From Dimorphilus gyrociliatus (lineage: Eukaryota > Animalia > Annelida), in assembly GCA_904063045.1 (NCBI GenBank), contig CAJFCJ010000021.1, forward strand, positions 682,001 to 746,000: a stretch of 64,000 nt of DNA, given 5' to 3'. Below the pieces are notes generated by a model that did not search any database, was not told where the DNA came from, and worked only from the letters and a program-made list of their open reading frames with translations. Both the position numbers and the translations under genes were made by a program. This document shows, in pieces, positions 271 through 15,100 of the stretch. The number at the start of each line of letters is the position of its first letter. The first letter of the stretch is position 1.

Positions 271-1614
271 ATGTCTTTCTCTGGTATGTGGAAATTGGTT
301 GAAAGCGATAAATTCGATGATTATATGAAGGCAATCGGTTTGTATTTTTTATATACAATTTGCTTTTTTTCGTTTATAAAGAAAGAGAAAAAAGCATCAT
401 TTTCTATTAGAAATCGACTAATCTTCGTTTTTGATCGATATAAGTACGTTTATATAAAGAATATATATATATATAAATTTATATATATGGAATATAAGTG
501 TCTATATTTGATTCAAGAGCTTAAATGGAGCAAACGCTGGTTGTATCCTATTGTAGGACTAAAACACTATAAAAGTATCTTATTACATGCTTTAAACAAT
601 TGTTAGCAAGCTATTTCTTTCCAAGTCTTATCGCTATTTATATCATTATCGCTGTTTTCGTAGTTGTAAACTCTCTTTTGAATGAAATTATAAAAGAGTA
701 TGATTAGGATCAATTAAAAAGAGATCTCTCAGATTACGGATACAAAATGTCCTTATAACTCATCTTAATTATCTTCCCCAGACAGCAAAAAGTAGTTGCA
801 TCCTGTGTAATAATTTTCTTTATCTAGCAGAAGTTAGATTACAGTGATATCGTATCCTCTTTATATTATAAATTTTTATCTGAAAGTACCGTATTTGTAA
901 AAGATTAACGACTATTCCCAACCTACTATGTACTTAAACCGTAATATTTATCAACATAATTAGTCATTATAATCTTTCATTGAACAATAGGCGTTGGCTT
1001 GGCACTCCGAACCATCGGTAACAAAACTAAGCCATCTCAAGAAATCATCATCGATGGAGATAACTACACCATCAAGACTATTTCTACTTTTAAAAATACC
1101 GAAATCAAGTTCACCCTCGGTACTGAATTCGATGAAAAGACCATCGATGGAAGAAACGTAAAAGTAAGTAGAAAACAATAAAATAAATGTTATAGGTGTG
1201 GTTCAGGAAATAACTATTTCTTCACTCTCTTTTTAGACTACTCCAACTAAAGATGGTAATAAGATCGTCTTACACCAAAAGGGTGATCCCGATTCAATCA
1301 TCACTAGAGAGTTGGTCGATGATAACACAATGAAAATGGTAAGCAATATGTCCTAAAAAAAAACAATAAAACCTTACTAAGAAAAAACAGAGCAAACATT
1401 CTGTTTACATGGATTTATCACAAAAAAACACATTTAACTTTACTATTGTTTAGTGACATTTAAACAAGATAAAGTCAACAAATAGTATTAGTTATCTTCT
1501 AATATAATAAAAATAGTTAAATAATAAAAACTATTAAAATTTATAATATATTTCAAATTTCAGGTTCTTACTTGCAAAGGTGTCGTTTGTACAAGAGTTT
1601 ACAAGAAAGAATAA
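271..1614 (+). CDS. FABP: Fatty acid-binding protein (iLBP/FABP family), 4 exons, 130 aa
   Basis: Exons 271-337, 991-1163, 1237-1338, 1564-1614, all GT-AG and in frame. Product: [130 protein letters not shown]. It has the GxWKLxxSxxFDxYMKAxG motif, the F-x-LG-x-EF-x-E-x-T-x-DGR motif and a C-terminal R-x-Y. Internal exons of 173 and 102 nt match the canonical FABP gene structure. AATAAA at 1654-1659. Confidence 0.97.
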
Positions 1615-1871
1615 GCACTTGGCTTTTGGTCTTAGTCTCTAGTTGCCTAGAAAAATAAAATGTTCTTACAATTTTTAATTGTCTTCTTTGCTTTATTTTA
1701 CTATTCGTTAGATGAAAATTTTCGCACTGCTTATACAGTATATACTATATATATATGTGCAGTATATATATATATTGTATAATATAAATGTTCAACAATT
1801 ATACGTACATAGTTTATTCCGGTCAAAAGATGTCAACTATTTTAGACCGACTACTACTAAGATTATTAATT

Positions 1872-3912
1872 TTAAATCGGTTGAAAAAGCTTTTTAAGAG
1901 ATTCCTTGTCGTCATTCACGGCGATTTGTAAAGCTACATCAAAATCTGGAACGTAAGCGGCTTGTTTAGCTTTCTCTTTCATTTCGACTTTAAAATCATT
2001 CGACTGAGATATAAAATATAAAAAAAAAATAATTAATTAACTATTTAAACATCTTAAGAGATCAACTTACAGCTTTTTTAAGTTTTTCATATCCTCTATT
2101 ATATTGTGAAGATATTAAATCCATTTCGTTTTGTATTCTTTCCAATTGTTCGCAAGTTTCTCGATTTTCCGTCTGGAAAAAAAAAAAGCATTAAATATGA
2201 ATATTTAATTACTTAGAAACACAAAAAATGCAACTGAAAACCTTTAATTTTTCACTTTCACATTTAATTTTTTTAATTTTATCTTCTTCCGTTGAACTCG
2301 CTGATAAATTATCACTCATCATCTTCCTAGCTTTACTTTTTACTTTCTCAACTTCTCTTTCTAATTTTATACAATTAGATTCCGATATCTCAAGTTTCTG
2401 TTTACTTTCGTTAAAAGATCTCTGATCATTCTCTAGACTTCTTCTCGCCTCGACGAGAGACGCTTCCACTTTTAATAATTTATCTTTTAGAGTTTCCTCA
2501 ATCTTTTGCTGATTTTCATAATTATCAACCTCCAAAGAAAGTTCATCAATAAGACTGCTACAATACTCAATTCTTTGCATTTGATTGCGAAGTTGTAGCT
2601 TGTCTTCCGTAAAACGAGTCTTTTCCTCTTTCTTCTCCTATTAAGCATGAAAACAAAGTAGAGTTCAACGAAAGGTCTACAAAGAATGAAAAATTCTCTA
2701 ATTGAGAATTCAAAACCTCAATGGTATGCTCCAATTTTCTCATTTCTTCTTCATGGTTTTTGACGTTAAAATTTTTAATACTTTGTAATTTTCTAGTCGA
2801 ATCTTTTGTTATATTAACCATTGTACTTTTAGATTTCTGTATAGGAAATAATGGTCAAGTTGAAATAGATACATATATATATTAAACGTATTGATTTCAA
2901 TTAATTAATTACGTTTTTACTGCCAATTTCTTCTACTTCTTTTTTCATGTTGAGTAAACGATTTTTTTCGTCGTTTTTCTCTTTCGTTAAAACTCTCTTC
3001 CTTGCAATCAGCTCTTCCAACTTTTGCTTTATCTAGATAAATCAAAAAACAGAATAGAAGAAATAGATACAATAATAATAATAATTTCATACTTCTCTTT
3101 GACGCACTAATCTTTCATGTTTTTCCGTTTTTAGCGTCTCCAACTCATCTCTTCTTTCAACTAATTTTTGTATTGTTCTCTCCTTTTCACCTCTCAATTC
3201 AACTTGCCTTTCCAGTATGTACGTAATGCTATTGTGTTGATGAGATTTGAACAGGTAATAGTTCAATAACGGACTGAGAATTCTGCATATCGTGGGACTA
3301 TCTATAATGGAGAAAGAGAGAGAGAAAGAGAAAAATTGTGATTTTCTTTCTTAAACAAAATTTATACTCAGGAATAAAAAATCATGAACGGTGAATTGAT
3401 CAACTTTACAAACTTCTAATGCAGTTCTCCTAAAATGATTAATTTAACAACTAAATTAGTAATATAGCTAAAAGTTTAAATTTTCATTCAAAAGAAAAAT
3501 GAATTACTTACAATATCTTATAAAACCATAGCCAATTCATCGTTCCTACATATAACTGTTCGTAAAATTCAATGTTTGTATAGTTAAGGGGTACCTATGG
3601 AAACAAAGAGTTTAAAAAATTGTACCAGTGTCGTTTACAATTTTTAGATATATACCGTATCGATGCAAGTATCGGAAACACCAAGAATATGTTTTATAAA
3701 AAATCTGAATACAGTTAGCCATTTTGTTCGCTTAAATAAAACGTAGATCATTAATATTTCTTAAATATTTTTTAAAGTTTGGAGAAAATACAAACATCCG
3801 GTTTCTCAAAATCGGCTATTTCTAGGCGAAATTCCGTAAAAGTTTTATTACAAGTATTCACTAGATACTTGGGAGATTTTGTCGGACATTGATAAGTCGT
3901 TACATTAGCCAT
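1872..3912 (-). CDS. NUF2: Kinetochore protein Nuf2 homolog (NDC80 complex), 10 exons, ~471 aa, divergent
   Basis: Minus-strand exons 3912-3796, 3730-3656, 3594-3512, 3429-3368, 3301-3093, 3032-2913, 2836-2717, 2637-2242, 2172-2071, 2003-1872. All are GT-AG with consistent phase; the 2717 donor was chosen over an alternative 36 nt downstream. The N-terminal segment LRTALEVCKVDQFTVHDFLFLNSPTICRILSPLLNYYLFK aligns with the Nuf2 CH-domain segment (human, from memory: [40 protein letters not shown]). It is followed by ~300 aa of E/K-rich coiled coil, and the total length is close to known Nuf2 proteins. Confidence 0.82.
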
Positions 3913-4365
3913 TATTCAACTTAAAGTACGAAAAAAACGGTCAACACGAACTATAGAGCTTATTTATTCCCGCTCGACGCCATTTTGAAATTTTTTTATT
4001 TAACCGTCACCTTCGTAATTTTTTATTTAACTGATAATTATAATATTAAATAATAATTTAAAAAATAACAAATTTAATGATTTGAATTTTTCATAAGAAA
4101 ATTTTTAATTTTTAATGAGAACCATTTTGTAGACTTCCACCACAATTGTGTGTGATAGTCTGTCGATTTAAACTCTTCCTGAAACGACTCTACTCTCTTT
4201 TAAAAAATCTTATAAAAATTTCAAGTTGTTTATAAAAATGGATGAAACTTGGCGTGTTAATTTTGAAGAGATCAACTAAGAGATAGTATCAAATCGTAAA
4301 CGCCATTGTTTCAGAAGAAGAGAAAGAAATTTCTAGTTAATTAATTCTTTAAATAGAGAGCAATA
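3913..4365. promoter_or_regulatory. Compact bidirectional promoter between NUF2 (-) and USP3 (+)
   Basis: The two start codons (3912 minus, 4366 plus) are 453 bp apart, head-to-head. YY1-like CGCCATTTT at 3978-3986 and CGCCATTGT at 4301-4309. Confidence 0.7.
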
Positions 4366-7289
4366 ATGGATTGTCCTCATGTTGGTGGAATGGTGAAAAT
4401 TGCTTCGCCACCGTCTAGACTTGATGGAGATCCTAATACTTGGAAATGTGAAGGTATATATATATTATTCAATTATTTGGTCACGTGATTTTTTCGAATT
4501 TATAAGTTACTATTGATAATTAGAACACGTGTTAGATGACCATACCCAGCGTTTGAAGTTGTAGATTGATTTAAAAGGATTATTTATAGGGCAAAAATGA
4601 GGTTACATTAGAAAAATAAGCCTTAAAGAAAGTTTATTGAATTTTATTTATCTTATCTATCTACTTTAAAGGGATTAAAGTAAAAATTGAATTATATTTT
4701 TAAGGAAAAAAAGACTGATCTTGTTAAAAAAGGTTGTTAGAGTTTTAACAGTTTAAGTCAAAGAGAAGAGGTGAAAGGTACGCTTTAAGGATTTAACAGT
4801 TTAAAAAAAAAAGCCTAGAGGGTAATGTAAATATCTTGAAAGAACTTTCAAAACTTTTTACCTAAATATAAAAGGTAAAACAATTTAACGACATAGTTTC
4901 ACTTATTTTCTACATTCTTTCTTTTGATCGTATTGTTTGATAAAGCGATTATTATGTATATTTTATATTTTTACTCATACTCTATACACTTGCTACAGGT
5001 TGTGATAAGGACGTATACACATCCCTTTGCTTGTGTCTAACTTGTGGAAAGCTAAATTGTGGACGATATGATAAAGGACACGCCGAAGAACACTTTAAGA
5101 AAAGCTCAAGCGAAGTAACATGCGCTCATTGTATTTGTATGAACGTTTTGGATACGAGCGTTCATTGGTTAGTTTTCTTAAATAGATTTTAGATGTATGA
5201 TGGAATTCTTTTCTCACTTATTTTAGCTATATATGCAATACTTTTATCTATACCGACACACATTCTCACCACGTTGAAAGACTAAGGAGAAAATTGCTCA
5301 AGCTAAAAACAACTGAAGAAGAGAATTCAAAAGAAAATATTGGAGTATGTTGCAAAAGGAAGATAGCTGTAACCCATAATGAACCAGTTAAGAAACCAAG
5401 ATCCAATCAGTTATGTCCACTTAGACGAGCTGGTTTAAAGAACTTAGGAAATACTTGTTTCATGAATTCTGTTTTGCAATGCTTGAATAATTTGATTTTT
5501 TCGTCATTTATCCAATCTCTACCTGATATTCAGGTAGTTAAAGCAATGAGATTGACAAGAAGTAAAAAATCTTCGGATTGTATAGGAGACGAGTAAGAAT
5601 TTTCTTATTTTTTCTTTCACACCTTTCCTCCCATCTCTCTTATTGTTTCTCTTTCACACTACTATCATTAATAAAATGCGTAGGTAGGAGTAACTAGGTC
5701 GTTGAACTTCAATGGCTTTTATTATATCCTCTGTGAAGTGTATCAACTAAAGCCAATTTATAAATATCACAAGAATAATAATAGATTTTTATGTTCAGTA
5801 CGTAAATTTATATTTCATGACTTATAGTATTGTGATTCATTGTCATCTTGGCGTATAAATTTTTCAACCTATAAAAAGACATGTCTGCATTTCGCCTTGC
5901 CTTTTTTTCTCCCTACCAATTCCCTGAAAAGAAGGAACTTGAACATTTTTGTCGAATATTTTTATCAGCAGCGTTTCATTTAAATTTATTGGCTTAGTGG
6001 CAAAGGGAATTTGTCCTTGTTCTAAGACGCTCTCTGTCTCATCATGCTTATTTTTATTTATTTTTCACCTAATATGCTAATATCTTGTAATGCATTTATT
6101 GATTTTATACAGATTGCTAACAGACAAATTGAAGAAGGTTTTATCTGAAATGGATGTTAAGGGTAAAAGGACGACAGTTCACACTCAAGAATTACTTTCA
6201 ACAGTTTGGAGAGTTGTTCCCAGATTTTGTGGCTATCAACAGCAAGATGCTCATGAATTTATGCGATATCTTTTAGATAGAATACGAGGAGAACTCCAAA
6301 CATACGAAGTAATATAAATATATATTCATACATATATAGATATATATATATATATATTTTTTTTTTTCATAAATAGATAGGAAAGCAGAATGGTGTCAGT
6401 AGCAGCTCTAGAAATATTGTTGATGATGTTTTCGGTGGTTTATTGCAGAGTAAAGTAAAATGCTTGAATTGTTGTAGTTTATCAAATAAATTTGATCCAA
6501 TGTTAGGTATGTATATATAGTTTAATTATTTATGGTAATTTTATGCGTGTATGTGAATAAACATATTGATTTTTAGACATATCTGTCGATATACCGTTCA
6601 ACGACGACGATACTTGCGATTTAAAAGGTTTGTAATTGCTTTCTATTGCAATATGTATTTATATATACAGTAATATATATATATATTTATTTATTAATAT
6701 TGTTAACTGAACTGTTAATTTACTTTTTTTAGACTGTCTCAGACATTTCACGGAAAATGAACTTTTAAGCGAAAATGATCAGTATTACTGCGAAAAGTGT
6801 AAAAGTAAGCAACCCTCGACAAAGAAACTTTCAATTCGAAGATTACCTAACGTAAGTTTCTAAACAATCGACTTTAGAAGACAAGAAAAGTCGTTTCCCT
6901 ACATTTGACTAAATTAAATATCATTTAATCTCTTTTAGGTACTATGTATCCACTTAAAACGCTTTCGAGTTAACGCTAATCAGAGGTTGAAGATTTCTAA
7001 GCATGTTTCTTTTCCGCTTCAAGAATTAGATATGTCCGAACTGGGCTTAGAAGAAGACACTAGAGCTACTAGATCTCAACAGTGTGGTGGTACTGTCTAT
7101 GACCTTGCAGGTTTAATAGTTCATCATGGCAAGAGTGTGTCTGGAGGTCATTATACAGCTTATGTTGTTGAAGATGATCATTGGTTACATTGTAACGACG
7201 CCCAAGTAACGTGCTCTGATGAAGAAACCGTCAAAAAAAGTCAAGCTTACGTATTATTTTATTCCAAGACGAAAATAGGGTCGAAATGA
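4366..7289 (+). CDS. USP3: Ubiquitin carboxyl-terminal hydrolase, USP3-like (ZnF-UBP + USP catalytic domain), 8 exons, 489 aa
   Basis: Exons 4366-4453, 4999-5167, 5227-5592, 6113-6308, 6377-6506, 6577-6627, 6733-6851, 6939-7289 (1470 nt, in frame). Starts MDCPHV (USP3 MECPHL). ZnF-UBP: CLCLTCGKLNCGRYDKGHAEEHF...CYIC. Cys box GLKNLGNTCFMNSVLQCL; GYQQQDAHEFMRYLLD; VLCIHLKRF; His box YDLAGLIVHHGKSVSGGHYTAY...WLHCND. Confidence 0.9.
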
Positions 7290-9351: not shown

Positions 9352-9688
9352 GATGAGTTTTTATCAGCTGGTTCAATGCTTCCTTTGAAAGAAGAGTGAA
9401 TGTCTTTGGAGACATCTCCAACATGGGATTGTCTTACGACTTAAACCTATATAAATTCATCCTTTATCTTCTGAGAAGTTGAACTTTTTCAATTCAACAG
9501 ACTGAAATTTATGCTATTCAAACGAAATGAACTTCGGCGGAAAGGATTTATTACTTCGGCAAAAACTTCCTCCACATCAATTTTCTTCCTTATAATTTTA
9601 ATATAAAATCCTGAGATTTGTTCAGTAAGTTATCCAAAAACTTTCCAAAGTTTATCAATAAAACAAAAACAATTTGAAAACAATTAAA

Positions 9689-10363
9689 ATGATGACTTTT
9701 AAAGTTTGTCTTGTTGTACTTTTGCAGGCTGCATTTACTGATTTGGTTTTGGGAGTAACTACAATAATTGATGTTCAACAATCTTTATCCGTGGCCAGAG
9801 ATGAAGCTAGCGAACTTTTCACTGAATCTGTTGAACAATTTTATCCTGTCCATGCTAATTGTTTTGGTGGAGTAGGAAATGACGAATTTGAAAAATGTGC
9901 CCACTGGGCTGATGGACTTTCCGTATCGCTCTCAGCACCTGAACCTTATCTTTACCTTGGTGGACCAGGTAGTAACAGCGATCTTGCAGTAATTAGAGAT
10001 GTCCTGCAAACATATAAACTTCTCTTTGAACAAATACAAGCCGAACAAGACCGCGAATTCTTTTGGCCATGCACTAGACAGACTTCAAGCCCTTGCAGTT
10101 ACGTTTGCGATTACAAGAGATTGGATTATTTGGACTATTGTTGTTATATTTACAGCGATATTCTTCCTGCAGTTGATAGCGCTGTACTCGATATTCAAAA
10201 TTACTTGGGACAAGCAGCAAATGTAACTTACGAGCTAACCGAAATCGGCCTTACCTCTACCGATTCTGATATTAGGGAATTTCAACTTTTAAGCTCTTTT
10301 ATCCTAAAAAAGCATTTGGAACATGGAATATTGTATGCCCAAAACTACCAACCACCAGTTTAA
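9689..10363 (+). CDS. Intronless predicted secreted protein A, 224 aa; putative long-chain four-helix cytokine (IL-6/G-CSF/Unpaired-like)
   Basis: 675-nt ORF from ATG 9689 (the ORF track starts at an upstream TTG). Hydrophobic N-terminus MMTFKVCLVVLLQAAFTDLVLG is signal-peptide-like. Amphipathic helical segments at aa ~25-52, 97-120 (DLAVIRDVLQTYKLLFEQIQAEQ), 146-173 and 196-220. Cys at 58, 70, 128, 136, 140, 151, 152; N-glycosylation sequon N178-V-T. TATAAAA at 9602 and AATAAA near 10408. The ORF is well supported; the cytokine label is inference. Confidence 0.85.
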   Translation: MMTFKVCLVVLLQAAFTDLVLGVTTIIDVQQSLSVARDEASELFTESVEQFYPVHANCFGGVGNDEFEKCAHWADGLSVSLSAPEPYLYLGGPGSNSDLAVIRDVLQTYKLLFEQIQAEQDREFFWPCTRQTSSPCSYVCDYKRLDYLDYCCYIYSDILPAVDSAVLDIQNYLGQAANVTYELTEIGLTSTDSDIREFQLLSSFILKKHLEHGILYAQNYQPPV

Positions 10364-10779
10364 ATCTTAATATAAATAGTAAATATATATTAGGATGAAT
10401 GAAATGGAATAAAAAGAATGAATGGATTAATTTTAAAAGAACTTGCCGATAAATAAGAATTGCATGTTTGTAAAAGTATGAATCTTTAGTAATTAGTTAA
10501 GATATAACATCTAAAAGTAAAAAGAAATGAACTTGTATTGAATAAATATGTTCCTCTTTTGCCTTTAAAGGAAAGAAATATAAATCAACTGGTACATCTA
10601 TGCAAAACAAATGTATTATTATATGCTTTTGTTCCAAATATGCAAACTCATTTATTTTCAAAATTCTTTATTATCATATTCAAAAAGTAATAAAATGCAT
10701 TTAAAAACAAAACACAAAAGTCTTTTTTAGTTCTTTTTATTATAAATGAAGAGAGTTTTTAGGTATACAATTTAAAGAG

Positions 10780-10997
10780 ATAGAGAGTGAGAGAGAGAGA
10801 GGGAGGGAGGGAGAGGGAGAGATGAAGAAGGAAAGCCAAGTTGGTGTGAAAGACAGAATGAAAGAAAACTAAAGAAGAGGTAAGGATTTACTTATCTCTT
10901 GAAAGAAAAAGAAACAAGTATAAAGATTGCTTATCTTCAATTCTTTATCAATTACTCAGACAGAAAGACAGACACCAAGAAAGAAAGAAAGAAAGGG

Positions 10998-11028
<31 letters not shown>

Positions 11029-11040
11029 GGATGAAAAGGA
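10780..11040. repeat. Purine-rich GA/GAAA low-complexity tracts between the convergent secreted genes
   Basis: GAGAGAGAGAGGGAGGGAGGGAG and AAAGAAAGAAAGGGAGAGAGAAAGAGAGAG runs are directly visible. Confidence 0.8.
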
Positions 11041-11425
11041 CTTATAATTTTAATAGCTTAACTTCCTAACTCGCTATTCAAGCTCTCCTTCAATAAATAT
11101 GTAAATACATATATGTATATAAAAGCTACATAGACATTGTCTCCTTAAACTTATGAAAGATTGATAAAAGGGAAAAAAAGGCTAAAACAGTAGACAATAT
11201 AGATTCAATACTTTTCTGTATTGTAAAATATTCAAACTAATAAACAAACACGTTAAAAATTACACTCTGAACACTTTTAGGTGAAGAACACAAGAGATTA
11301 TTTGAATATTAGCAATATTAATAATAATGTTAATCATAAAGAAAAAGGTTATAGTGATATGATAATAGTATTTTTTCTTTTCTTTTTTCCTTTCTTTTTC
11401 GTTATTTTCTTTGCTTTTTCCTTTC

Positions 11426-12100
11426 TTAAATATTGTAATTATCGATAATCTGCGCCATTTCCTCAGTTTGTATTTGCAATAGACGTGCAACACCAAAGTT
11501 TAGATAGAAGAAATCGTAATCTGGACTATAACTATTAACATCCTTAATTATAGGATTAATGGTTAAAGTCGATTGATATGTAAACATATAATGAAAACGT
11601 TTGTTAATAAGATTTAAATTTTTCAGGGCATAAGTTTGAATAAAGCATAAGTAATTCTTGTAAAACTCTATATAATGATTACAATAGTAATGACATATGT
11701 TATTTTCACTCTTCTCGCAACTAAACAAAAAACCATCGGAGGTTATATTCACCATTTCTTCAATTATTCTCTTATAAATTATTAATTGATTTAATAATTT
11801 GTTTACATCTTCATCAGTACTATTTCCACCGTTGTATCTTATAGGTTTTGGTAGATGTATATCTAATAGAATTTCGTCGCTAAAATCTTTACAAGCGTCA
11901 TTTTTCGTTAATTTTTTCTCTTCTCCCATTTCGCAATTTACGTAAAAAGGCGTTAAAACACTTTTAGTTTCTTTCCATAAATTTAACGAAATCTTTTCGT
12001 AAGATTCAAATATTGTATTTAAATCATTTCTATTCCAATTCTTGCTTTCGATTGTAAGATTTTCAACAATTAACAAACTTATTACGATAAACTTTAACAT
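11426..12100 (-). CDS. Intronless predicted secreted protein B, 224 aa; paralog of protein A, putative long-chain four-helix cytokine
   Basis: 675-nt ORF from ATG 12100 in very AT-rich DNA. Signal-peptide-like MLKFIVISLLIVENLTIES. Cys at 56, 70, 128, 136, 140, 152. Aligns without gaps to protein A over aa 70-159 with 22 identities. Sequons N93-S-T and N118-I-T. TATAAAA at 12183-12177 and CCAAT at 12344-12340 on the minus strand. Confidence 0.85.
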   Translation of the reverse strand: MLKFIVISLLIVENLTIESKNWNRNDLNTIFESYEKISLNLWKETKSVLTPFYVNCEMGEEKKLTKNDACKDFSDEILLDIHLPKPIRYNGGNSTDEDVNKLLNQLIIYKRIIEEMVNITSDGFLFSCEKSENNICHYYCNHYIEFYKNYLCFIQTYALKNLNLINKRFHYMFTYQSTLTINPIIKDVNSYSPDYDFFYLNFGVARLLQIQTEEMAQIIDNYNI

Positions 12101-15100
12101 TCTTCTCTTTATTCTTTTTCTGCTTATTACCTTTAACAAACTCTTTCTTATGCTTCTACGAACGAATTTTCTCTGATTTTATAGGAATTTGAGGGAAGTA
12201 TTCTTGTTTTTCTTATTGATTTGATAAATAATCAATAGAACCCAAAACCTGGTAGCTGGTATCCTTCTGTCTTCATTTACAATTGAAACTGTTCATTTAA
12301 AAAACCAGATCGAAAGCAACCATTTCAAGACAGGGAATGATTGGCTGACAAGTGAAATAGAGGAGAGGAGAGAATGACACATCTCAGAACTTGAATATAA
12401 CTAAAAGAAACATAACTTTTTTTATTATTGAAATAATCATATGTAGTAGTTATATAACTATTATAAATTATTATAAGAATGTATTGATAAGTAAGTTATT
12501 TACTTATTAACCAATCATTTAATCAGTAAATGTTTTTTTTATCTAAATGAATATATTTGGACAAAGGAAAGACTTTTTTCTTTTATTTCTAGGAATAGAT
12601 TCGTCCAATTAGAAACTTTCCTTTGTTTTTTTTTACCAAGTAGTAAAGCTGTATATTATTATAAACATAAGTGTTAAATAACTGTACTAATATGTATTTT
12701 ATGTTCTCTCATTCTTTTTCTCTATCTATCTATCTTTTAATAAATTCTGGAATTTCGACTAGTCATCCAAAAGAGAGAGATAAAGGGATAATATATTTTC
12801 AATCAGATAAAATGATAAACAAAAAAACACTTAGAATATATCTAATATTTTAAATTTATTAATAATTTCTCCCTTCTCTTTCTGCATTTAACAATTTGAT
12901 AAGAGGGAAAAAGCAAACAGTTTGACTATCTCAATACTTTTTTCTTTTAAAAAACAAACAAATCTATGAAATTCATTAATAATTATCCATTTTTACGTTG
13001 CCATAACAAAATATATTAGCGTTTATTCAAGTGAATTTGTACTACTTCTAAATATTCTTTGCTCTATTAAATACTCTATTTTAAATCAATAAAAACAACT
13101 TTAATAAATAATAATAATCCTCTTTAAAAAATTAGTCAAGAATCACTGCGTAATTGTATTAGAATAGAATAGTTATTTACCTCTCTATTTAATAAATCCT
13201 TTATTCGAATCAATTGTCAATTTGAACATAACAAATATAATAAATTAGTTGGTTTCTAATTAAGGGGAAAGAATAACAAAATAGATCGTCTGCATATAGT
13301 CAGTGAATGGTAGTTGAAAGGAAAAACATAAAAATAAGGTATGTTCATACAATTCTACGTTTTCTCATTAGTTTATTCATTTTTGGAAAACCAAATTTAG
13401 AATAACCAGAAAGAAGTATATTTCATCATATACATTTATAAAACAGTATATATGTATATATATGTATATACTATACTGTACTTCTTAAAACGGAAAATGT
13501 TCAACAAACAAGTAGTCTTTATTGCGCAACATTAAACATCTGGTATGCGCAACAACAATGAGTTAATAACAAACGTCTTTTATTATACAAATCCACTAGT
13601 GTTAGTCTATAGGTTAAAGGTCTATAAAATAAATGATTAGTCTTTGAGGGGATCTTGCAGCGTAAAATATTGTTGAGGGGCTCCATATGGCATAAATGGT
13701 GCATCTAGTAACATTTTATTCCCTCAGTGAAAGAATGGATCATAGTCCTTTTTGTAAAGTTGTTAGTATTTTGTTATTTACCACTTGTAGGGGTAAAATT
13801 CATTATCATTCTTGACACAAGTCTATGGGGGATTTGCCTTAACTCACCACCAATAGAAAAAAGCTGTTGTCACTTCCATTAGATGGCACAACTAGTACCA
13901 CAAGCAGAATAAAGTGAAACTATGTAGTACAGTACGACTAATATAATGAAAATATACTAAAGGGAAGGAAGAAACGAAGAAATATTGGTATATATATATA
14001 TATATACAGTGTATATATAGAGAGAAAAGACTAAAACATTTGGAAGAACAGGATAAAGTATAAAAGTAAGGATAGCAAAAAAAGAGAATAGGGAAAAGAA
14101 GAATGAAAGAGGTGGAGAATTTCATCAAGCCCAACAAATAGTCAATTAGTTATTTAGACGGTTGAAAATCAGCAATAAGACCCTTTTCGATCAGAGTCGA
14201 GAAAATAAGCGGCTTTTCTAACCGACTCGAGATATATAATCGATTTCCGGACGTAAATATCGATCGATGAAACGGAAAGGATCCACTCATTTTTTAACAG
14301 ATGGAGCTATATGTATCGTGCTAACGTATCCTGTCAAATCCAATATATCTTCGTTTCTCTTATTCCTTTAATCTTATCTTACTACAAGTCACGGTTCGCC
14401 TTTACTTCCTACAATATTTTATCATTTAACAAGTGTTAATTTTTACAAATCAAATCCATAGATATGTTTTTATAGGTCGGTTGGTTAATCTAAGAGATTA
14501 TCTTTTATCAGCTCTATTACAAGCTAATATTGGCTGAAAATTCAATAATTAATCCTTTAATATACACCTTTTCATTCGAGTGTGGAAAGTGTAAAAATGG
14601 GTGCCTAATCATATCGAGTATTTAGAGAAAGCCTCTTATCTCACCAGTTAATTTGACAACACGATAAGCAGCTCTAGGTTAAATCAGTAAGTGTATATGA
14701 TCTATACATACAAATGGAGATATATTATTGCACATATCATTATGTGTACACACAGTACAAAACACATAAGTGAATGAATGTCTAAAATGTCTATCTGAAC
14801 AAGAAGAAAGCATTATATGTGAAGTAGTACTCGTGTAGTAAAATGACTTTGAATATAATATATATACTGTATGTATATATAAAATAATATATATATATAT
14901 ATACAGTATATAAATATAGAGAGAGTATATGCATATTTATAATTTATGTAATTTATCGCCTGCCCGCGTTTCGTCGATAAATCGACAATGATATACTAAC
15001 GTTCGGAAGTAATTATTTCTGTCTATTGAAACACATTTTTCGCATGTTTGTAATCTGGAATTGACTGGATTTTAACTAGGACAAGAAAAGGCTTAACATT

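Follow-up and report, generated by a model that had tools for sequence, protein, structure and literature searches.

Two convergent, intronless genes, here called A and B, lie in a 64,000-nt stretch of the genome of the annelid Dimorphilus gyrociliatus (assembly GCA_904063045.1, contig CAJFCJ010000021.1, positions 682,001–746,000 of the forward strand; hereafter the window, in whose own numbering coordinates are given). A and B may plausibly represent a new family of secreted ligands, restricted to dinophilids and built like long-chain class-I cytokines and hormones, a tentative reading with a near-even chance of being right. Its support comes from the architecture of the proteins and from their statistical neighbours in the feature space of the protein language model ESM; descent from the IL-6, G-CSF or insect Unpaired (Upd) families is not claimed. 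According to this reading, the product of each gene would consist of a signal peptide and, after it, roughly 200 aa folded into four amphipathic helices of 25–28 residues connected by long loops. The size and the layout of helices and loops would be those of IL-6, G-CSF, LIF, growth hormone (GH) and prolactin, and the products would be extracellular ligands of such a physical type. Form A, abundant and acidic, and the approximately 58-fold rarer form B would most plausibly act on class-I cytokine-receptor-like proteins. The bundle topology, the function as ligands and the receptor are thus presumed features of A and B.

The coding sequence of gene A occupies positions 9689–10363 of the plus strand and that of gene B positions 11426–12100 of the minus strand, each being a single exon of 675 nt encoding 224 aa from the first ATG. 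The stop codons face each other across 1,062 bp (10364–11425), and this intergenic spacer contains the 3' untranslated regions (UTRs) of both genes. An earlier note on this DNA, made from the letters alone, had described such a pair and its coordinates matched exactly. The window is AT-rich, with a GC content of 27–34% (about 30%); with such base frequencies, 7.9% of random codons are stops and the expected number of 224-codon open reading frames (ORFs) is about 9e-5. A and B were the only ORFs of at least 150 aa in the entire window, and the longest ORF found among 200 shuffles had 153 aa. BLASTP comparison of the two products gave an E-value of 2e-12 with 25% identity over aa 43–154, the overall identity being 19%. 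As judged from their sequences, A and B are true paralogs which have strongly diverged. The MAFFT alignment of A and B was ungapped over aa 70–159 and contained all the residues which the note had listed as shared (C70, D75, P84, P86, Y89, G91, G92, D98, L106, Y109, K110, E114, F124, C128, C136, Y138, C140, Y147, Y150, C152, I154 and L159), together with the offset motif L-x2-E...P-x3-N-C common to both proteins.

When 1.84 billion representative proteins were searched exhaustively with an HMMER profile, only two relatives emerged besides A itself, both from Logan assemblies: the B-type protein P0002 (218 aa, E = 6.5e-27, five runs) and the A-type protein P0003 (223 aa, E = 3.3e-17, one run). 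The candidates P0004–P0006 were rejected as low-complexity repeat artefacts. Word-indexed searches with A alone, with the four-sequence alignment and with the mature-protein alignment detected no relative beyond A, B, P0002 and P0003. By these searches, the family is taxon-restricted, encompassing so far Dimorphilus and one or two related organisms. The identity was 29% between A and P0003 and 36% between B and P0002, and 19–21% across the A and B types; therefore, the duplication that produced A and B is older than the divergence of Dimorphilus from whichever organism or organisms bear the orthologs. Both P0002 and P0003 retain the ORF length and all six cysteines described below.

The orthology of B and P0002 could also be followed by position. 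A block at 14093–14712 (minus strand), about 2.0 kb upstream of gene B, is 82% identical to positions 56–694 of L002, the contig of P0002, in which this 640-bp block is likewise located about 2.0 kb upstream of P0002 and is followed, in the same order, by two smaller blocks. Upstream of B, the window and L002 are collinear, which makes B and P0002 positional orthologs. The 640-bp block contains perfect runs of more than 50 bp. Its indels have lengths not divisible by three, and an Rfam search of the 9–16 kb region identified no RNA family, meaning that it is not a known RNA; the block was therefore regarded as a conserved non-coding element, with an enhancer, a promoter or an unannotated non-coding RNA as possible identities. 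It sits in a stretch (12.1–20.3 kb) without called genes.

The coding sequences of B and P0002 were too diverged to be detected by blastn. The NG86 (Nei–Gojobori) comparison of the two gave a proportion of nonsynonymous differences (pN) of 0.42 and of synonymous differences (pS) of 0.64, the latter saturated, so that the resulting dN/dS of about 0.44 is a rough bound only. These values indicate that the proteins, as far as can be told from the sequences, evolve fast under some constraint. Rapid divergence of this kind (29–36% identity between orthologs, pN of 0.42 against a saturated pS of 0.64) is typical of cytokines and was counted in favour of the ligand reading.

All four family members begin with a hydrophobic segment of 19–22 aa, recognized by inspection, followed by mature proteins of 198–205 aa. 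The signal-peptide-like N-termini noticed earlier in A and B were thus seen again, and the family proteins are probably secreted. For A, the predicted signal peptide covers aa 1–22 and the mature protein has 202 aa, a mass of 22.8 kDa, an isoelectric point (pI) of 4.3 and one N-x-T sequon. For B, the predicted signal peptide ends at about aa 19, leaving a mature protein of 205 aa and 24.5 kDa with a pI of 5.3 and two sequons. Mature A, B and P0003 are acidic (pI 4.3–5.3), and N-x-S/T sequons are present in all four members. Six cysteines (C58, C70, C128, C136, C140 and C152 in the numbering of A) are invariant in the four sequences and could form up to three disulfides; P53, G61, L106, Y109 and a few other residues are also invariant.

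The secondary structure was predicted with AlphaFold2 (AF2) in two runs. The two-sequence full-length alignment gave a mean predicted local distance difference test score (pLDDT) of 37.6, and the four-sequence alignment of mature proteins gave a pLDDT of 45.8 and a predicted template modelling score (pTM) of 0.36. Both runs agreed on the secondary structure. In these low-pLDDT models, DSSP assigned long helices to residues 26–51, 96–122, 145–172 and 194–218 (full-length numbering), nearly identical to the boundaries guessed beforehand in the note (A, ~25–52; B, ~97–120; C, ~146–173; D, ~196–220). The AB loop has 44 residues and includes a mini-helix, the cysteine-rich BC link has 22 residues and forms a small hairpin, and the CD loop has 21 residues. 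In all four sequences, the peaks of the hydrophobic moment coincided with the AF2 helices, which are amphipathic and 25–28 residues long. An up-up-down-down bundle would gather all six cysteines at a single end, where the AB loop begins, the BC link lies and helix C makes its first turns. Since feasible cysteine pairings would be available in an all-antiparallel bundle too, the placement of the cysteines does not discriminate between the two.

ESM feature searches with A, B and P0003 led to one common neighbourhood. The top neighbours, with scores of 0.90–0.93, were unnamed clusters of proteins of 223–230 aa from Cnidaria and Arthropoda, and in a neighbouring cluster from molluscs, 11% of the members carried PF00489 (IL6). 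The vertebrate neighbours were the LIF, IL-12 alpha, IL-6-like, G-CSF-like, cardiotrophin-2-like, IL-11 and Hormone_1 clusters (scores 0.87–0.90; 183–198 of 256 features), and the nearest named clusters of all three queries included IL6, LIF/OSM, GCSF, IL11, IL12, CNTF and Hormone_1. Across the top neighbours, 183–208 of the 256 features were shared, and at least 170 shared features are typical for same-family matches in the calibration of the tool. For A, every set listed down to rank 19 was a class-I helical cytokine or unnamed. The model of the arthropod cluster itself matched an IL-27-alpha cluster with a template modelling score (TM) of 0.59. The unnamed clusters comprised 56 members in Cnidaria, 56 and 91 in Arthropoda and 114 in Mollusca; all of these may represent helical cytokines of invertebrates that have so far gone unrecognised.

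The transcription of the pair was examined in a public run from 2017 (X1), the library type of which is not on record, its RNA nature being deduced from the pattern of coverage. The contig of gene A spans 9654–10658 on the plus strand (word depth 3518) and includes all of A with a 5' UTR of at least 35 nt and a 3' UTR of about 295 nt. The contig of gene B spans 11248–12035 on the minus strand (word depth 61), with a 3' UTR of about 178 nt, and ends 65 nt before the ATG. Both contigs matched the genome exactly and colinearly, with no intron. No X1 sequence was found on the spacer between them (10659–11247) or on the outer flanks of the pair. Because of these discrete contigs and the empty spacer and flanks, X1 was taken as a transcriptome rather than genomic DNA; A and B are therefore transcribed and, as the note had proposed, intronless. 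In X1, the depth of A was about 58 times that of B. Gene A is present in the gene calls of the assembly (P0001); B, despite its transcription and conservation, is absent from those of the contig, which represents an annotation gap. Two GA-rich microsatellites composed of AGAG and AGAA units (10776–10822 and 10958–11029) lie inside the convergent spacer.

Words of the gene A transcript were found also in DNA runs of the genome project. They occurred, in addition, in a marine metatranscriptome from 2025 (share 0.14) and in the runs of another organism (share 0.30), which hints at close relatives or strains and at an expression high enough to be visible in environmental RNA.

Upstream of each gene, a TATAAAAT box was read directly from the sequence, at 9602–9609 on the plus strand for A (87 nt upstream of the ATG) and at 12176–12183 on the minus strand for B (83 nt upstream of the ATG). 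An identical TATAAAATC string thus precedes both genes at a nearly equal spacing, and the box of A is a putative promoter TATA box. Sites of the TTCNNNGAA type (STAT/gamma-activated site, GAS) were counted as well: 6 of the 24 sites in the window fall within the 3.8 kb between 8.8 and 12.6 kb (8803, 9172, 9469, 9818, 12154 and 12587), two of them being identical TTCTGAGAA sites upstream of A. This local clustering was rejected as evidence, being a post hoc observation with a window-wide count at the level of chance, and it was not replicated upstream of the ortholog in L002. NF-kB-like sites also occurred at chance level.

Several results weigh against the ligand reading. In Pfam, no family was found for A or B at E ≤ 10. 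The three-dimensional packing of the AF2 models is unreliable at a pLDDT of 38–46, and Foldseek searches with the low-confidence model found nothing significant in the PDB (best E = 0.28), among Swiss-Prot models (best E = 0.058) or in the AFDB clusters (best E = 0.17). The shape search of the Atlas gave TM values of 0.39 or lower, and for the model of A supplied by the ESM Atlas (pTM 0.61) there was no cytokine-like structural neighbour. The ESM recognition was low for B and P0003, top tens consistent with a single family arise for one third of shuffled proteins, and the neighbourhood may capture no more than a eukaryotic, secreted and helical character at a length of about 220 aa. A wide search with VIA-align likewise gave no match above noise.

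Among the non-significant Foldseek matches, those with the lowest root-mean-square deviation (about 11 Å vs. about 20 Å) and the highest TM (0.30–0.36) were to G-CSF, IL-27 p28, growth hormone, somatolactin, prolactin and somatotropin. Cytokine and hormone entries constituted 8 of the top 50 matches in the PDB and 11 of the top 30 in Swiss-Prot. This soft signal, counted in favour of the ligand reading, was read as a shared order and length of helices and loops, not as a fold match.

Sequence-level comparisons with known cytokines were negative. When all four members were searched in Pfam, the sole match was to an unrelated family (E = 0.09). The best match of the family profile among PDB sequences was IL-3, which was not significant (E = 0.8–1.1), and single-sequence PDB searches with A, B, P0002 and P0003 detected no cytokine even at E ≤ 10. 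The PDB matches obtained were at the level of chance (a Fab, IL-3 at E of about 1, a de novo TIM barrel and a deacetylase). The motif echoes cited in the note did not hold across the family. The IL-6-like LWKET...HLPK is present in B only, and the Upd-like LQ-x-Y...EQI in A only. The LQTYKLLFEQIQAEQ string of helix B is also confined to A, with L106 and Y109 as the sole invariant residues of that helix. Because the motifs are not conserved and no family member matches cytokines in Pfam or the PDB, the arguments from IL-6, G-CSF and Upd motifs fail as evidence. The idea of an IL-6/G-CSF/Unpaired-type helical cytokine pair thus survives in its secreted-looking paralogs, helix layout and ESM neighbours, and is lost in its motif echoes and in Pfam and PDB sequence matches.

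The alternative which survives best has an appreciable chance, below even, of being true: A would be an abundant lineage-specific secreted helical-bundle protein without receptor signalling, such as a carrier of lipids or small molecules, a glandular product or a humoral factor serving in stress or defence (physical analogues being insect apolipophorin-III and the Turandot proteins), and B a low-expressed drifting paralog. The very high depth of A, the intronless genes with their putative TATA-driven promoters and the absence of a confirmed fold for A and B all point in this direction. However, the matches to apolipophorin were within the noise of the tool for helical models, and the neighbours in feature space were cytokines, not carriers. 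Apolipophorin-III is a five-helix up-and-down bundle with short loops that lacks disulfides, in contrast to the long loops and six cysteines of A and B. As for drift, B retains its ORF, its cysteines and an ortholog and is not simply decaying.

A by-descent relationship, in which A and B would be members of the IL-6/G-CSF/LIF or insect Unpaired families, was considered unlikely. It would agree with the nearest named clusters in feature space, which carry PF00489, PF16647, PF01291, PF07400 and PF00103, and with the C58/C70 pair just after helix A, the position of the first disulfide of IL-6 and G-CSF. Nevertheless, the sequence searches of Pfam and, by phmmer or hmmsearch, of the PDB gave, apart from one unrelated Pfam match, no cytokine except IL-3 at a non-significant E of about 1, and the cited motifs were not conserved. 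In addition, IL-6-family and upd genes have introns, unlike A and B, and Upd proteins are matrix-associated, basic and roughly double the length, whereas A is acidic.

Slightly less probable still is that A and B are fast-evolving reproductive or recognition proteins (gamete-interaction or cocoon proteins or pheromones), comparable with the helical paralogs lysin and sp18 of abalone. The 36% identity between positional orthologs beside an 82%-identical non-coding block, the very unequal expression of the paralogs and the taxon restriction would fit such a role. On the other hand, the conserved block is probably under constraint and gives no calibration of neutral divergence, and proteins of the lysin type lack conserved disulfides. 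Finally, the notion of chance ORFs or pseudogenes without protein products, to which the absence of B from the gene calls and a composition of B equal to the background might lead, was effectively refuted by an expected ORF number of about 1e-4, the significant similarity and transcription of A and B, and the conservation of intact ORFs and invariant cysteines in other samples.

The genes called by the assembly upstream of the pair form a compact group (271–7289; L001:583–7601) encoding a lipocalin, Nuf2 and a zf-UBP/UCH ubiquitin hydrolase, and are unrelated to the pair.

Although JAK, STAT and gp130/Domeless/IL6R-like receptors are present in lophotrochozoans, no IL6-like ligand has been reported from most invertebrates, and a survey from 2026 placed IL-6-family ligands in vertebrates only, Upd in insects only and a lectin-type ligand in shrimp (PMC13203501). 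No description of a lophotrochozoan helical cytokine ligand was found in the literature. A bolder version of the ligand reading, rather doubtful at present, is that lophotrochozoans have, in A and B, their first identified class-I helical cytokine ligands, which would constitute a fast-evolving two-ligand system (two agonists, or an agonist and an antagonist) for gp130/Domeless-like receptors of Dimorphilus. Together with the unnamed Atlas clusters, they would then belong to a widespread invertebrate cytokine repertoire invisible at the sequence level. A small, culturable annelid with a compact genome and two short intronless candidate genes would make the question of lophotrochozoan ligands directly testable. 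The significance is limited by the unconfirmed fold, the collapsed motif evidence and the confinement of the family to one small lineage. If A and B were non-signalling proteins, the pair would be a clean case of a taxon-restricted, fast-evolving and highly expressed secreted family with a new disulfide pattern, mostly of local interest.

Among known systems, apolipophorin-III differs from the A/B family, in which three long, length-conserved loops and six invariant cysteines were found. The unnamed Atlas clusters (Cnidaria, 223 aa; Arthropoda, 230 aa; Mollusca, 229 aa) belong to the length class of A and B and gave the highest feature scores (0.89–0.93). The HMMER search gave no relative beyond the four sequences.

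The main comparison is with the long-chain class-I cytokines and hormones (IL-6, G-CSF, LIF/OSM, CNTF, IL-11, IL-12 p35, IL-27 p28 and GH/prolactin/somatolactin). Unlike these, A and B show no detectable sequence or profile similarity to the group, which counts against the ligand reading, and they have intronless genes and, for form A, an apparently very high expression. Their 22-residue BC link also holds three of the six invariant cysteines, and to our knowledge the C-x7-C-x3-C-x11-C cluster of the family has no counterpart in class-I cytokines. In common with this class, whose mature chains run to about 160–210 aa, A and B have a predicted signal peptide ahead of some 200 mature residues, four predicted amphipathic helices of 25–28 residues and long AB and CD loops, the former including a mini-helix. 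The cysteine pair directly after helix A, the N-glycosylation sequons and the fast sequence evolution are likewise shared. Upd proteins are the only established non-vertebrate helical ligands of JAK/STAT (PMC13203501). The insect Upd1, Upd2 and Upd3, ligands of Domeless, resemble A and B in being secreted, predicted helical proteins of invertebrates encoded by clustered paralogous genes.

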